DNA of 64,000 nt from positions 31,620,001 to 31,684,000 of the forward strand of contig OZ116698.1 in assembly GCA_964199315.1 (NCBI GenBank), read 5' to 3'. The notes under the pieces were generated by a model that was given only the letters and a program-made list of their open reading frames with translations, did no database searches and was not told the origin of the DNA. The DNA comes from Orbicella franksi. Taxonomy: Eukaryota. Made by a program: the position numbers and the translations under genes. Below are positions 17,985 through 51,359 of this stretch, piece after piece; position 1 is the first letter of the stretch, and every line of letters starts with the position of its first letter.

Positions 17985-20260
17985 TTAACTACTGTCATAA
18001 CCTGGTCTAAAGCACAGGTACGCATAAGCTGGATGGTAGGGTGCATATCGTATCACAGGAACAGGCGTGTACGAGGGGTAGAATATACGACTTCTGTTGC
18101 TCGAGTCATCGGATTCTACCGCTCTGTCTTGGTCACTGTTTGTGTCCTCCATCTTTTGGTTTGTTCTTTTTCCTTTTGATCGACGATTGGAAAACCAGAC
18201 CTGAGAAAAACGACAATAAGTATTTGTCAGAACTGTATCTGTATCAGTCTGCTGTGGTTCCCATACAACCGGCTTATACATGGGGTCTTGGTAGCGAGCA
18301 AAACCTTCTTTTTAGAGTTCCTCTCATTAACACACGGTATAAATTATTTCAATCTACGGGGGAGAGTTGGACAATCAGTGTAACCCATTCTCTGAGGTTC
18401 AATTAACGAGATACCCTGTTGATATGGAGTTTCGGAAGTTTTTTTGTCGGAAATCGATCAGACTAACTTGCATGCCGATGGGCGGACATATACGGTACAT
18501 TTTGTTTTTGAAATGAGAAAACAATTATCTTTCTGAAGTCTGGAAAAATAACCTTTTAGTCTGTGGATTTGATCCTGATGTTTTATAAAAAGAAACACTC
18601 GTGTCGAGGTGAATTCACGTGCTAAGCACATGTTTTACAAGTTTAATCGTGATTCTACCTCGTAAGTCTATAGATGAAATGAAGCTCCTGGGTAATACTT
18701 TATGTCCTGAGCTAGCCCGCAGCTGTTAGGACCGGGTCACGAGAAAGGTTTGCAGACGAAACTCACCTGAATTCTCGATTCACTGATGTCCAATCTTTCT
18801 CCAAGTTCCTCGCGAGTCAGCACATCCGGGTATTGTGTTTTCTCGAAGGCTTTCTCCAGTTCTCGAATTTGATGTGGAGTGAACTTTGTTCGATTTCGTC
18901 TTCTGTAGTGTCTCAGCTTTTGCATCCCACTTGTAATGGAGGCAATGTCGCTGGCACTTACTGCAGCTGGTGACGAGGAAGTCGATTCTGCAAACGATCA
19001 ACAGAACATTGTAACAAACATAAATACAGCATGAGCCGGGTCCCTGGATAACCAGGTGACTCCCAATAAAACAACGTAACTCCTAAAGATAAGTTTAGTA
19101 TAGAGAGCAGCGACTGTTGCTCAGTTATGACAGCAATTCAGTTCATTTTAAAATCTGAATAGCGAAAAGCTTCTGTGGTTTCAACACTCTGCCATAAGAC
19201 AAGAGAGTGATTACAGACCGTCCTCTTTGGCATCTAGGTCATCCTTAAATTCACTTTATGGGTTTGAGCGACTTATTAATCCCTTCAGGTTTAAGTTTTC
19301 TTGCACTGTGACACCGATATAATAGTTTGAAGTAGTCTTTCGTATCACATTTCCGTCGCCAGGCAAGGTGCTCAACAACCTTATGTTTTCATTTAAAGAT
19401 CCTGTCTTACCCGGCTCTTCTTGAGAGGAAGATGACGTGGAAGGACTCAAGCTGACAGTTCTTGTCTCCTCGTTGATACTGAGGATATTAGCAATGGAGA
19501 ATGATCTTCTCTTGGGTCTAGGCTTGGGTTTTCCAGCATCCCCACTGTTTGTGCTCGAAGTATCACCCTCACTCTCTGCGTCACTGTTTTCTCCCTCAGA
19601 CTTTTCCATATAGTCACTTCCAGTTGACTTGACCCTTCTTAGCATCCTGCTGATGACAGTTAAGGGTGGCAGACTTTCCTTAGTGCAATAACCGTCAGCC
19701 ATTAGCTTTTCTTTGACTTCCCAGGAGAAGATTCCTGGCGTTGCGCGGCGATACTCCTCAATTTTGTTCTTCACTTCCGAGCTCACATCTCTCGATGTCT
19801 TCCTCTGCGCGCGGCCGGGTTCAAACGATCCAGTGTCGTTGTATTTGGAAAGCAGCTTACTGATGCAGCCATGTGAAACTTTCAGTTGCCGGCTGATATC
19901 ACATGGGCGGATTCCAAGTTCAGCCATTTCGATGATTCGTTGACGAACGGAGTTTGGAAGTGGTTTGCCATTTACAAAAACTCCACCTAGCTGGTTGAAC
20001 TTCCCGTGACCTACAATAGTTTAAAAAATAGTTTAGTTGCAGATACATCCATTGTACCGCAAGCCTGACTAATTTTCATTAACGAGTTGGCCACCGACAC
20101 TTCTTCGCAATAATAATTCCGATTAGATAGCCATAGGCGGCTGTGGCGCCATTATTACCTCATATCCTCAGTCTAACTTGGAAAATTAAACAGAGATATC
20201 CCGAAGAAAGCTTTATTTAGAAGGTATACCTGGGCAGTTATTCAAGCAGTCACTTCTCAT
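17985..20260 (-). CDS. PaxD: Pax gene A (Pax3/7 / PaxD-like): paired domain, octapeptide, S50 homeodomain, 355 aa. Exons 20260-20230, 20010-19411, 18987-18767, 18200-17985
   Basis: Spliced ORF: [11 protein letters not shown]|[18 protein letters not shown]...SHGCISKLL...[16 protein letters not shown]; octapeptide SFSIANIL; homeodomain RRRNRTKFT...[10 protein letters not shown]...IQ|VWFSNRR with the PRD-class intron between Q46 and V47. KIEEY and FSWE are Pax3/7-type. The symbol denotes the class only; paralogue number is not assigned. Confidence 0.92.
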
Positions 20261-48477: not shown

Positions 48478-51359
48478 ATGTAAGTCCAACCATTTCAAGA
48501 CCAGAGGACGATAAGCTCGGAAAATAGAAACACAAACAGAAACAAGGCTTTAGCTAGCCATTGTGGATGCTAAAGCATGAAAGTAGGACCAAATAACTTC
48601 TTTCAAAATTAGGATATGGCTTATTTTAATTCTTTTTGAAGCTGTTTTTCTTGAAGTCTTTCCACAGTATTCATACCAACCTCTCAGGATTGAATTTTGT
48701 TTTAAGTTATCTTTAACGGTATTTTAGGATGTATGTCGCTTATTCAAGGTTGATGGTTTTTATTGCATGGATGTCTTAACAGGGTACCCTCGACAAATTT
48801 GATAGTGCATCCGTGTAAAATGTTATATTTTGATAACTTATTAAGGTTGACTGGAACTGGGGGATTAAATTTGCCTGTTGTCCATAGTCCATAAACGTGC
48901 GATCGAGGTGTACTTTTGTTTCATCATCGAGTAAGGATGTTGTTTATGTCACATTTTTCGGTTGAGGAAAAGGAAACCAAAGTTATCAGGAGGATACTCG
49001 AAACTTCCTTAAGCTTGAAAACCACTGATTTGTAAATTACCTTAATGAGGTTTCTTATGGGGTGCAATGGGAACTGGGATTTGCCTCTGGCAATAAAATA
49101 GGGAGTTAGCCCGTGACAATGGATAAAATCTCAAAAAGCCATTCAATATCACGTTTCATGGAATGAAAACAGTTATACATAAACAGTAAAGCATCCCATA
49201 GTCTTATTACACGGAAGTCCGAGTCAGACCCTTTCTTAGTCGGGTTCATAGTGCCAGGCGTTTCTAGCGGAGAGCTTAGAAACTGGGAAGGAGAATTGCA
49301 CCCGCTTGCTCGCTCTTTGGTCCACGAATTCTAAAGCTTGAAAGCTAGCCAAATTAGCAAAGTTCATACTTGTTCTCACGACCACCTCAGATGTCAATAA
49401 AAGGGCCTTTGGGCTGCCTCGTGTCATTAATGCCGGCTTGTTGAATCGATAAAATCGATAATCGATAAAGTATAATTGAAATTAATAAATTGTATCGGGA
49501 CTTTATAAGAAGATACTCTGTGAGTGTTGATTTTTAAATTATTCTTATCGATTTTATTGATTTATAAGTTTTATCGGCGCAAAATGTCTCCAGTTATTGT
49601 AGGGCAGTGAAACATCAGAAAATGAACCGATTTACGTAGGTTGGGTTCCTTTAGGATTATCCGGATCAGGATCAACGATCCGAAATCACTAGGATAATAG
49701 TGCCTCTGAAGAAGCAGTTTTTTTAGTCGTGGATACGCGAAGCGTATAAACGGTTAAATAACAATATATCTTAAAATGGCAAATGACCCTTTTCCTCTGT
49801 TCCATAGTGAACTTAATGTTAGGATGGCAGGTATTAAGATATTTAAAAAACAAACTGACATCTATAAAGTTTTTGAAACAACAAATTATATCTACCTATC
49901 TACGATACTATAGTACCTTAGGACTAGTGTAGTTCTTCAACCAAAGCTATTAATTATGACCCATGAAAAAATTGGCTAACATGGGGGCTAAAGGGGAACC
50001 CATAACTACTCCATCTATTCGATCGAAAAAGCAACCATTGAATGAAAAATAAGTGTGGCTAGTAGTAAAATTAAAAAGTTCCTTAAGTTGAATTTTGTTG
50101 AGTATGAGGTCTGACCCAGTGTTACTTTCTAAAATAGCATTGACAGCTAAATCAATGCTTTCAGTTAAAGGAAATACTTGTAAAAAGACTAATAACATCA
50201 TATGAGACCAAAAATATTTCACTAAAAGCTACATCTTAAATATCCGTAACAAAAGAGAAAGTATCTGTAGCACAAAACTCTGACGAGATGTGGGGCTTAA
50301 TTAAACATCAAAGATACTTTGCTAAGTAGTTATAAGTGCCTATGGAGGAGACAATGGGTCTAAAAGGAGGAAACCAGACATCTTTTTTGGCTAACATTTG
50401 TAACTTTCCGGTTAAAGTGTATTCAACTCTTTCATAACGATAAGATACCCTTTAAGACTCGGGATTCAAACCCCGAAAACTTTAAATTGCCCATATTTGT
50501 CTTTGAACAGTTTGGATTCCATACCCTGTTGCACGTGTCATAGATGTCATGTGACCCAACCTCCGAAGCCGAAGGACCTGGTTTCTTTCTCCCGGCAGGG
50601 TCTGGGTGTTTCTGCGGAAAGAGCATTAGTCTAATACAATTTAGTTTGGGTACTGAGATTTAGGCTAAGAAATGAGATTGGCACAATTCTCTCACCCCCT
50701 TTAGGACCCTACAGAAAACGGCATCTTAGAATATGTTAAGGTAACCACTCTAGTCTTTGTTGACGTAGAAAAAAACCACACAAAAACTTTTTGACAGCTG
50801 GACTGCCATTGTCTTTCACAAATAAATGGCGGATATGGTAGTGATTCGTTACTAATAATAAACATACTTTTTGTTGGCCATCACAGAGAATACACAGGAT
50901 GCTGAAGACTCACGCGAAACTTTTCCGCTGCGGATTCAGAGAAGAGAACGCATCAAGTACACGAGCCACCAACTACATGAACTTGAAACAGTATTTAGAA
51001 TCAATCAGTACCCATCTGTGTCAGGGAGAGAACATCTAGCAAGAAAAATTGGTGTTACTGAGTCACAAATTCAGGTGCATGTTCTATTTCAGCATATTTT
51101 CCGATTATGCAAATATGCCAGGTGTGTGATCATTGAGCCAAGATCTTCTAACCTACTGTATCTGTTTGTTGGGCCATAGGTGTGGTTCTCAAACCAAAGA
51201 GCGAAATGCAAAGCTAGAAGACACTCGTCTAATGAAGCAGATTCAAGAACAAACAACCCAAACTACTGCATGTGTCGAAGGATTTCAGCTTCCAACATAC
51301 TACTAAGAATAATGGGACCTGGTACCTCAAGAGTATTCTTTCCACCTTGTCAACGGTGA
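46923..51359 (+). CDS. PaxD: Pax gene E (divergent PaxD-like), apparently intact, ~310 aa. Exons 46923-46932 (tentative), 47033-47587, 50887-51074, 51180-51359
   Basis: MSRG|[18 protein letters not shown]...FSWEIRDRL; octapeptide SYTIASIL; homeodomain QRRERIKYT...ESQIQ|VWFSNQRAK; open frame through all exons; stop TGA 51357-51359. Exon 1 was chosen because it supplies the conserved Gly at a G|GTAAAT donor and is conserved in D. Confidence 0.8.
49950..50222 (-). mobile_element. Penelope-like element reverse-transcriptase fragment in intron 2 of E
   Basis: LKELFNFTTSHTYFSFNGCFFDRIDGVVMGSPLAPMLANFFM matches the PLE RT motif (QxDGxAMGSPLxPxLANxFM). Confidence 0.75.

Follow-up and report, generated by a model that had tools for sequence, protein, structure and literature searches.

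Drosophila gooseberry and gooseberry-neuro are a closely linked, divergently transcribed Pax3/7 pair with a paired domain and a homeodomain carrying serine at position 50 (S50). Like the coral genes described here they are linked Pax3/7 paralogues, so that genes of this class are not always dispersed, and the remark of the initial annotation that Pax genes are usually dispersed has to be weakened to that extent. The gooseberry pair, however, goes back to an independent arthropod duplication and consists of two genes, not five or more, and is not known to show concerted evolution confined to the paired box or to include a chimeric pseudogene. The hexapod genes engrailed and invected are old linked paralogues whose conserved coding blocks are homogenised in each lineage while the rest diverges, with trees that group them by species. 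They belong to another gene family, and in the coral genes A and B it is the paired box that has been converted, whereas the homeobox is untouched (dS saturated).

The anthozoan PaxD genes (Acropora millepora PaxD, Nematostella vectensis PaxD1-D4 and Anthopleura Pax-D2) have the same paired domain, octapeptide and complete paired-type homeodomain, and several copies per genome have already been reported (PMC5584322). The cluster differs from them in that the orthologue of NvPaxD2 is another O. faveolata gene, not one of A to E, and in its tandem head-to-head layout, its paired-box-limited conversion and its chimeric pseudogene, which are undescribed in the searchable literature; no paper describing a coral PaxD cluster was found there. 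Coral tandem arrays are kept in place, with synteny conserved between species (Noel et al. 2023, PMC10236652), and the cluster is likewise retained in place with conserved synteny. In at least three lineages, on the other hand, it is plainly a local departure from the 'very rare' conversion of that survey. The locus is very probably part of a stony-coral PaxD (Pax3/7-class) transcription-factor gene cluster shaped by conversion, unequal crossing-over and the decay of one copy. It adds to a gene class already known and does not amount to a new type of system.

Layout and products of the cluster

The window, a 64-kb stretch of Orbicella franksi DNA, is 99.1-99.4% identical to O. faveolata scaffold MZGG01000205.1. 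A six-frame scan and tblastn of the whole window gave five paired boxes and no more, each followed by a split homeobox. Genes A and B lie on the minus strand and C, D and E on the plus strand, the bounds of the cluster (17985 and 51359) being the stop codons of A and E. The gene models were built with GT/AG splice sites, with the exception of a GC donor in A intron 1, and have four exons per gene, the introns of A, B, C and E being in phases 1,1,0. The Pfam PAX model (PF00292) matched A, B, C and E at E-values of about 1e-48 to 1e-50 over its full length (model positions 1-125, 2-125 or 3-125); in D positions 2-48 alone were matched (1e-14), up to the first frameshift. The Homeodomain model was matched by the first homeobox exon of all five loci (1e-10 to 1e-15). 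The homeobox intron is placed between homeodomain positions 46 and 47, and residue 50 is serine in all five homeodomains, within VWFSN at positions 47-51. Octapeptide (eh1-like) motifs, FSIANIL in A, FSIDNIL in B, YMIASIL in C and YTIASIL in E, align with HSIDGIL of Pax3, Pax7 and gooseberry. The solved structures nearest to the paired domain are those of Prd, Pax5, Pax8 and Pax6. A/B and C/E share about 50% of their paired-domain residues and 49-54% of those of the homeodomain. Scans, Pfam matches and models, together with the lesions of D, bear out the initial annotation, which had described five S50 paired-box loci with these phases and orientations, four of them open and one a pseudogene, in two clearly distinct subfamilies.

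Gene A (minus strand; 20799-20769, 20010-19411, 18987-18767 and 18200-17985; four exons, 355 amino acids) combines a divergent PAI-RED linker in the paired domain with its octapeptide-like motif and S50 homeodomain, and is 93-94% identical to Oculina 'Pax-3-A-like' (P0005). Its exon 2 is matched at 0.98-1.00 by contigs of at least eight labelled RNA runs and of six probable ones; splicing of A was not directly seen in the RNA-run contigs. Gene B (minus strand; 29311-29290, 29027-28440, 28238-27988 and 27814-27608; four exons, 355 amino acids) has very short introns and a histidine at homeodomain position 52, likewise present in its orthologues. It corresponds to XP_020625855.1, 'protein gooseberry-like [Orbicella faveolata]', which falls in the same 90% cluster as P0033. 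The source of P0033 is a 1773-nt JGI contig whose last exon is 100% identical to B (tblastn) and in which B introns 2 and 3 are removed at the predicted junction, that is, a spliced B product. The tree assigns to each of A and B a 1:1 orthologue in Oculina, Desmophyllum, Pocillopora and Acropora, hence across robust and complex corals, in agreement with the old duplication proposed earlier. A/B-type relatives above 59% identity form a handful of clusters, every named one scleractinian, and the altered PAI-RED linker subfamily to which A and B belong was met, among named hits, in stony corals only.

Gene C (plus strand; coding exons 32095-32125, 33280-33828, 36887-37074 and 37812-37991; 315 amino acids) encodes a protein identical to RefSeq 'Pax-3-B-like' of O. 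faveolata (P0122). Counted from the 5' end of its mRNA contig to its stop codon it spans 31768-37991, the 5'UTR beginning at or before 31768, and the transcript extends to at least 39182, possibly to 40452. The spliced coding sequence is present in two JGI metatranscriptome contigs (L004, L005), and the junctions seen in RNA (32125 to 33280, 33828 to 36887 and 37074 to 37812) are all the splice sites of C. Gene E (plus strand; 46407-46437 as putative exon 1, 47033-47587, 50887-51074 and 51180-51359; 317 amino acids) has an open frame and intact splice sites. In run X7 an E-specific RNA contig (3 mismatches over 263 nt) links 47583/47587 with 50883/50887, the intron ends being GT..AG, and in run X1 a loose end matches the start of an E/D-type exon 3; the predicted exon 1 was not seen in RNA. 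Most reads on the paired-box exon of E are cross-mapping C transcripts, and because of this cross-mapping the expression of E rests on a few E-specific contigs and two reads. Transcripts with the predicted splicing were found for C at all sites, for E at intron 2 and for B, which disposes of the idea that none of the loci is expressed or spliced as modelled.

Relation to other Pax genes and other coral loci

Among bilaterian proteins A scores best, in most cases, with Pax3, Pax7 and gooseberry, a few Pax-1/Pax-9 entries being about equal, and the F-type protein P0118 has only Pax3, Pax7 or gooseberry proteins as its best bilaterian hits. Taken by itself, the paired domain of C gives equal scores with Pax8, Prd and Pax5. 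Of the Nematostella PaxD1-D4 set the tree took in NvPaxD2 alone. In it NvPaxD2 and Anthopleura Pax-D2 fall among the coral genes, NvPaxD2 grouping with P0236, and since Pax3/7 is the sole non-cnidarian group, placement against other Pax classes rests on best hits.

Locus-level synteny covered Oculina, Pocillopora and Actinia, the Acropora and Montipora loci being left out. Oculina locus L001 holds a C-type gene on the minus strand followed by B and A on the plus strand; at L002, about 165 kb away, an F-type gene is flanked by two more Pax genes. Mapped Pax genes of Oculina number at least five within about 190 kb, and probably nine or more are present there. Pocillopora locus L006 has F, B and A, all on the plus strand, and the anemone Actinia has two Pax genes in tandem. 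The cluster carries annotation, though no description, in other corals, and three genes of the window (A, B and C) are already auto-named. In the tree Oculina has its own five-copy C-type clade, separate from the Orbicella C-type clade; C-type genes have thus multiplied separately in Oculina, as the birth-and-death evolution put forward in the initial annotation would have it.

The B-C head-to-head spacer (29312-31767, from the B start codon to the 5' end of the C mRNA contig) measures at least 2.4 kb, a considerable length for a bidirectional promoter. Parts of it are conserved and collinear with the Oculina spacer between B and the C-type gene, where blocks of 64-79% identity follow in the same order (L001, 10027 to 5787), and two B-proximal blocks are kept in Pocillopora too. 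The head-to-head order of B and a C-type gene is present in Oculina; in the Pocillopora locus examined a co-oriented F-type gene is found there. Judging by the head-to-head arrangement alone, the spacer may hold shared control elements, a weaker form of the shared divergent regulatory region put forward in the initial annotation.

Paired-box conversion and the chimeric pseudogene

Within species the paired boxes of A and B are separated by a dS of 0.37 in Orbicella, 0.35 in Oculina and 0.75 in Pocillopora, while orthologous paired boxes are separated by 0.56-0.60 between Orbicella and Oculina and by 0.83-1.42 in comparisons with Pocillopora. In the linker, homeodomain and C-terminus A-B dS is saturated. 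The paired-box nucleotide tree groups A with B by species (support 99/98), unlike the whole-protein tree, which groups them by orthology; with third positions only, the species grouping is kept at 98-99 in Orbicella and Pocillopora, the Oculina pair being unresolved. All converted sites fall within nt 45-343 of the box. The Orbicella/Oculina quartet has 21 sites that group by species, at nt 87-343, against 13 that group by orthology, mostly at the box ends (nt 30 or lower, 361 or higher), and over the three quartets species-grouping sites (21, 27 and 26), located mid-box, outnumber orthology sites (13, 10 and 9). C and E display the same pattern more weakly, with a dS of 0.09 in the paired box and 0.2-0.3 elsewhere. 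The A-B pattern is recurrent gene conversion restricted to the paired box, and the conversion claimed earlier is thereby upheld at synonymous sites.

Pseudogene D (plus strand; 39520-39550, 40135-40688, 44351-44541 and 44690-44869) is an unprocessed duplicate that has kept its introns. It is broken by three frameshifting indels in exon 2 (+4 nt at 40268-40271, -4 nt after 40357 and -1 nt after 40534), by loss of the exon-3 acceptor (AG to CG at 44349-44350) and by an in-frame TGA at 44705-44707, corresponding to homeodomain position 52 in recognition helix 3, which bears out the pseudogenisation read initially. There is also a +3 nt insertion at 44524-44526, and intron 2 contains a retroelement remnant (zf-RVT, 41987-42493). 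By blastn, 38723-41597 is collinear with 45622-48477 of E (88% identity) and 41627-45484 with 35740-38600 of C (87-93%). The E-type 5' half comprises the upstream region, exon 1, the paired-box exon and the start of intron 2, and the C-type 3' half the remaining intron 2, the homeobox exons and the 3' flank, with a single switch located by three-way alignment inside intron 2 to within about 30 bp. Of the positions that distinguish C from E, D sides with E by 13:1 in exon 1 and by 38:10 in exon 2, and with C by 22:5 in exon 4. The duplicated unit is present as two tandem plus-strand copies, 35740-41597 and 41627-48477 (35740-48477 in all), with breakpoints inside intron 2 of C and of E, the C-side one adjoining a (TTAC)n microsatellite. 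This structure is the expected product of unequal crossing-over. A recent chimeric duplication had been proposed; the chimera stands, but at 7-12% divergence 'recent' was an overstatement.

Strong purifying selection on an old DNA-binding domain could in principle account for the likeness of the A/B and C/E paired boxes, the paired domain being the most constrained region of Pax proteins (here with a very low dN of 0.02-0.04) and gene conversion having been reported as very rare in a survey of coral tandem duplicates (PMC10236652). Selection on the protein, however, cannot bring the synonymous sites of paralogues within a species closer than those of orthologues between species, as is found in Orbicella and Oculina (0.35-0.37 within against 0.56-0.60 between), and the third-position tree and the mid-box clustering in all three quartets also favour the species grouping, so that we regard selection without conversion as very improbable. 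It is hardly credible that the C-D-E triplet, and D above all, is an assembly artefact, a false tandem duplication arising from haplotypes or collapsed repeats. Coral assemblies are indeed known to be troubled by tandem duplicates (PMC10236652), and in the older NCBI scaffold the D/E junctions fall precisely on N gaps (L003 16134-16231 and 21951), with an E-like piece, of only 96.3% identity, placed ahead of a D piece. Nevertheless, divergence over kilobases is about 12% between D and E and 7-8% between D and C, against roughly 1% between assemblies; D also has indels and a retroelement insert of its own, and is found in an independent assembly (3' half in L003, 99.4%) and in an RNA contig (5' part in L004, 98.75%).

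That E is an expressed duplicate heading for loss, which would leave three functional genes in the cluster and not four, we consider somewhat unlikely, in spite of a protein branch about four times that of C (0.23 against 0.052 outside the paired domain), the replacement of arginine by glutamine at homeodomain positions 44 and 52, an omega of 0.87 in the C-terminus, an exon 1 that is predicted only, and the scarcity of E-specific reads. The paired domain and the homeodomain have omega values of 0.22 and 0.18, the reading frame is uninterrupted, every splice site is intact, and intron 2 is correctly spliced in two RNA runs. No gene was called in the portion of E covered by the fetched stretch of the NCBI scaffold, but gaps in that scaffold explain it, and another coral assembly has an E-like upstream region and paired-box reading frame (P0125). 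A different objection, that the cluster is ordinary and known, each gene being the orthologue of a member of the Nematostella PaxD1-D4 set described in 2007, draws on the seven Pax genes described in Nematostella, PaxD1-D4 included (PMC5584322), the mention of 'Pax-3-B-like' paralogue pairs in Acropora (PMC12360431), the tandem pair of Actinia and the automatic names of A, B and C. It is improbable, given that the partner of NvPaxD2 (in a tree with NvPaxD2 as the one member of that set) is P0236 on another scaffold, that the named close relatives of A/B are all scleractinian, that C-type copies are lineage-specific, that a 2017 paper still has multiple PaxD copies as Nematostella-specific (PMC5584322), and that the searchable literature gave no description of the coral cluster. 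None of C, D and E stands in a 1:1 orthologous relation to a described gene.

History and possible role of the cluster

We propose that gene conversion, unequal crossing-over and the decay of one copy have shaped the cluster. The old paralogues A and B, in tandem, stand head-to-head with a younger C-type block in Orbicella and Oculina, and this block expands and contracts separately in each lineage. Conversion over about 300 bp of the paired box keeps A and B, and likewise C and E, alike in each species while the rest diverges, and probably halts where homology is lost. The second introns of C and E underwent unequal crossing-over, by which a unit of about 6-7 kb was duplicated and D, with its E-type 5' and C-type 3' parts, arose; D decayed afterwards.

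PaxD/Pax3/7 genes are central to debates on the pre-bilaterian Pax family and on the evolution of neural patterning, and one of the three groups of neurons in the coral Stylophora has a Pax3/7 factor as its marker (PMC8162421). The proteins of the cluster would be sequence-specific regulators, probably in neural cell types. It is possible, although we hold it to be doubtful, that the paired boxes of A and B alone have been homogenised again and again by conversion in different coral lineages, ever since a time before robust and complex corals diverged, coupling a shared paired-domain specificity to two diverged homeodomains and C-termini, and that A and B form with the head-to-head, fast-turnover C-type block a coral-specific Pax module for neural cell-type diversification. 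Were this the case, selection or some mechanism would keep one paired-domain DNA specificity across A and B, and the cluster would clearly run counter to the rarity of conversion reported for coral tandem arrays.

Together with the Oculina, Pocillopora and Actinia loci, the window points to a conserved PaxD cluster in stony corals with two deeply diverged subfamilies. It is a compact example of a DNA-binding domain held constant by conversion while its partner domains diverge, and of Pax genes made and lost through unequal crossing-over, and it supplies concrete genes for coral expression and binding-specificity work. The A-B spacer contains a 2167-bp DNA transposon (24349-26515) whose terminal inverted repeats are perfect over 31 bp and which has a target-site duplication of 5 bp (ACTGA). 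The NCBI O. faveolata assembly lacks this transposon.

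Gene models and transcripts

A six-frame motif scan, together with tblastn using the window's own exons, located five paired boxes and, after each of them, a homeobox divided between two exons. A, B, C and E each have a full-length PAX match in Pfam, with E-values of 1e-48 to 1e-50; the match in D is truncated, and Homeodomain is recognized at all five loci. Explicit models were built for A (17985-20799, minus strand, 355 aa), B (27608-29311, minus strand, 355 aa), C (coding sequence 32095-37991, plus strand, 315 aa), the broken D (39520-44869, plus strand) and E (46407-51359, plus strand, 317 aa), those of B, C and E having canonical splice sites. 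All loci have four exons, with the intron phases 1,1,0 given in the initial annotation, the last intron separating homeobox positions 46 and 47. Homeodomain position 50 is Ser at every locus, and the octapeptide-like motifs of the window genes align with HSIDGIL of Pax3/7. A GC-AG splice pair is predicted for intron 1 of A (donor at 20769-20768), since the junction is required by the reading frame and by the Oculina orthologue.

Transcripts of C, B and E bear out the predicted splicing at the junctions that they cross. The complete spliced coding sequence of C is found in two JGI metatranscriptome contigs, with 3/3 junctions as in the model and a 327 nt 5′UTR starting at 31768. P0033, the product from B encoded by a 1773-nt JGI contig, crosses the B exon 2/3 junction exactly as modelled and matches B at 100% in its last exon. 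Contigs of at least eight labelled and six probable RNA runs, from several studies, cover the whole of A exon 2.

Expression of E was analyzed by mapping reads and contigs of four RNA runs on it. Most coverage of its paired-box exon corresponds to cross-mapped C transcripts, because the variant letters match C and the upstream loose end is exon 1 of C. The word share for E in the RNA runs (0.5-0.59) was likewise dropped as evidence, because the C and E paired boxes may share many 31-mers. An E-specific contig from run X7, differing from E at 3 of 263 nt in the diverged linker, continues into exon 3 through the GT..AG junction of the model; the same exon 2/exon 3 joint is present in two X24 reads, and an X1 contig terminates in E/D-type exon 3 sequence. 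Raw reads of run X22 gave no alignments. No exon 1 joint (46437 to 47033) was reported among the reads and contigs of these runs. E might be regarded as a decaying duplicate, its protein branch being about four times as long as that of C and its homeodomain carrying Gln in place of Arg at positions 44 and 52. However, its frame is open and it is spliced, and comparison with C gives omega values of 0.22 for the paired domain and 0.18 for the homeodomain; decay is a rather doubtful reading.

Conversion bounded by the paired box

The proposal that A and B have undergone gene conversion is upheld by the synonymous distances and by the trees. Within species, the A-B paired-box dS is 0.37 in Orbicella, 0.35 in Oculina and 0.75 in Pocillopora, in each case below the corresponding orthologue distances (0.56-0.60 for Orbicella/Oculina, 0.83-1.42 against Pocillopora), and the linker, homeobox and C-terminus of Orbicella A and B are saturated. 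In the nucleotide tree of the box, A and B group by species, with support of 99/98 in Orbicella and Pocillopora and 84/86 in Oculina; with third positions alone, the species grouping persists in Orbicella and Pocillopora (98-99) and the Oculina pair is not resolved. The distribution of sites in three quartets delimits the exchanged segment: those grouping the genes by species extend from nt 45 to 343 of the box, and those following orthology lie at its ends (nt ≤30 and ≥360) and at isolated nt 199-201 and 260, two of these isolated sites being in codons where A and B differ. A runs calculation on the Orbicella/Oculina pattern gave 7 runs versus about 17 expected (z about −3.7). The A-B identity used for the conversion claim is 92% at the amino-acid and 90% at the nucleotide level; selection at the protein level, considered as the cause of this likeness, cannot give the dS and site pattern seen. 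Hence, the A/B pattern is that of recurrent conversion bounded by the paired box.

The same process operates between C and E on a younger scale. Their boxes have 9 differences in 369 nt (~98% identical, dS 0.09), and just 3′ of the box nucleotide identity is ~78% and dS 0.2-0.3, so that here too conversion is bounded by the paired box. According to a published survey, tandem duplicates in corals very rarely undergo conversion (PMC10236652); the locus in the window is therefore an exception.

The hybrid locus D

D is composed of two parts. Its segment 38723-41597 is collinear with E 45622-48477 (88%; upstream region, exon 1, paired-box exon and start of intron 2), and 41627-45484 is collinear with C 35740-38600 (87-93%; remaining intron 2, both homeobox exons and 3′ flank). 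Among the sites distinguishing C from E, D is E-like by 13:1 in exon 1 and 38:10 in exon 2, and C-like by 22:5 in exon 4. The switch from E to C takes place within ~30 bp, the C side abutting a (TTAC)n repeat. This structure is what unequal exchange between C and E would be expected to yield: crossing of intron 2 of C with intron 2 of E would generate the order C, hybrid, E. An assembly artefact is ruled out, as an independent assembly contains the 3′ half (99.4%) and an RNA contig the 5′ part (98.75%). The "recent chimeric duplication" of the initial annotation thus holds for the chimera and not for its age: the two copies of the duplicated unit differ by 7-12%, too much for a very recent event, although the duplication is younger than the C/E split (C/E dS 0.2-0.3).

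Pseudogenization of D, also proposed there, is evident from the paired-box exon, which has three frameshifting indels, from the loss of an acceptor (AG to CG) and from an in-frame TGA at homeodomain position 52; the homeobox has in addition a 3-nt insertion. The 5′ part of D is nevertheless represented in RNA, since the C mRNA contig L004 extends ~2.5 kb beyond the stop codon (L004 1094-3732, window 37992-40452) with a tail that holds D exon 1, unspliced intron 1 and the paired-box exon. This would be either read-through from C or a very long 3′UTR of C. Intron 2 of D contains a retroelement remnant, with a 168-aa ORF at 41987-42493 (minus strand; zf-RVT, E 2e-9), within a ~0.9-kb insertion that the homologous C intron lacks.

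The window is 99.1-99.4% identical to O. faveolata scaffold MZGG01000205.1. That older assembly has gene calls for A, B and C, B being the counterpart of XP_020625855.1, 'protein gooseberry-like'; three window genes already bear automatic names. No gene is called 3′ of C in the stretch examined (L003), which ends within the first exons of E. In L003, where it matches window 38255-50991, N gaps occur at the D/E junctions (16134-16231 and 21951) and an E-like piece (96.3% to E) precedes the D piece (99.4%), an order different from that of the window; for these reasons the tandem unit looks mis-ordered or collapsed in the older assembly.

A C-type gene from another coral (P0123 cluster, ENA/Logan) combines an E-like linker with an intron 1 whose end, 5′ of the paired box, is C-like; this hints at further C-/E-type mosaicism through conversion or crossing-over.

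Relatives, likely function and flanks

In a tree of 52 full-length proteins, with NvPaxD2 from the Nematostella PaxD1-D4 set, A-type genes of the window, Oculina, Desmophyllum and Acropora form one clade and B-type genes of the window, Oculina, Pocillopora and Acropora another, each with support of 97 and jointly with 100. The A/B duplication is therefore older than the split of robust and complex corals, in agreement with the old duplication first suggested. In the C-type clade, C pairs with E and five Oculina genes form their own clade, a division that persists with the paired domain removed. F-type genes comprise Oculina G001319 and those of Pocillopora, Stylophora and Porites, and NvPaxD2 joins another O. 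faveolata gene located on a different scaffold. An exhaustive representative search gave about a dozen clusters of A-type relatives above 59% identity, the named ones all from stony corals.

Oculina patagonica carries C-type(−), B(+) and A(+), arranged and oriented relative to one another as in the window, and, ~165 kb off on the same chromosome, the F-type gene with two more flanking Pax genes. At least five Pax genes were mapped there within ~190 kb, and the cluster probably holds nine or more in that interval. Pocillopora verrucosa has F(+), B(+) and A(+), and the anemone Actinia tenebrosa a tandem pair of homeobox-bearing Pax genes. Acropora/Montipora proteins P0012, P0039, P0234 and P0094 and Oculina P0132, P0229 and P0135 were placed at the level of same-chromosome membership. 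The spacer between B and C aligns collinearly with the corresponding Oculina sequence (64-79% identity), and Pocillopora also shares conserved blocks located 5′ of A and of B. The blocks 5′ of A, at 20493-21081 and 21717-21879, are non-coding, are shared with Oculina and with Pocillopora (72-76%), and are candidates for cis-regulatory elements of this gene. One Oculina member (L002 20017-24733 of CM126635.1, ~14.577-14.581 Mb) is annotated as a 597-aa PAX/homeodomain/reverse transcriptase fusion and overlaps an LTR-retroelement pol gene (RT_RNaseH, rve), which points to a retroelement insertion in or beside a cluster Pax gene.

Pax3/7 proteins are known as sequence-specific regulators that combine two DNA-binding domains with a Groucho-type repression motif, and by homology the window Pax proteins would act likewise. 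The PAI-RED linker of A and B is GRA(Q/K)RKTSRDV, the Pax3/7 equivalent being GAIGGSKPKV. Since the change is kept in all A/B orthologues listed, it suggests altered minor-groove contacts. The PaxD class and its multiple copies in one anthozoan were already known (PMC5584322). One neuron group of three in the Stylophora cell atlas is marked by a Pax3/7 factor (PMC8162421), and a 'Pax-3-B-like' paralogue pair has similar expression in Acropora tenuis embryos (PMC12360431). A conserved scleractinian PaxD cluster, its two-subfamily layout, paired-box-limited conversion in three coral lineages and an unequal-crossover Pax pseudogene of corals were not found in the freely readable literature searched, which does not include Matus et al. 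2007; they are features within a known class.

Regarding the flanking genes of the initial annotation, the GPCR pair is confirmed by two tandem intronless rhodopsin-family ORFs on the minus strand, 59124-60374 and 61176-62096 (7tm_1, E 1e-46 and 1e-44), and the Ig-SEA gene is not, the long ORFs on the other flank (3351-3836, 5379-5912, 8843-9247 and 16991-17395) having no Pfam match. At 24349-26515 the A-B spacer contains an element of 2167 bp that has perfect terminal inverted repeats of 31 bp and is flanked by a 5-bp target duplication (ACTGA). The NCBI O. faveolata assembly lacks precisely this sequence; the element is therefore a polymorphic DNA transposon, and was probably mobile recently.
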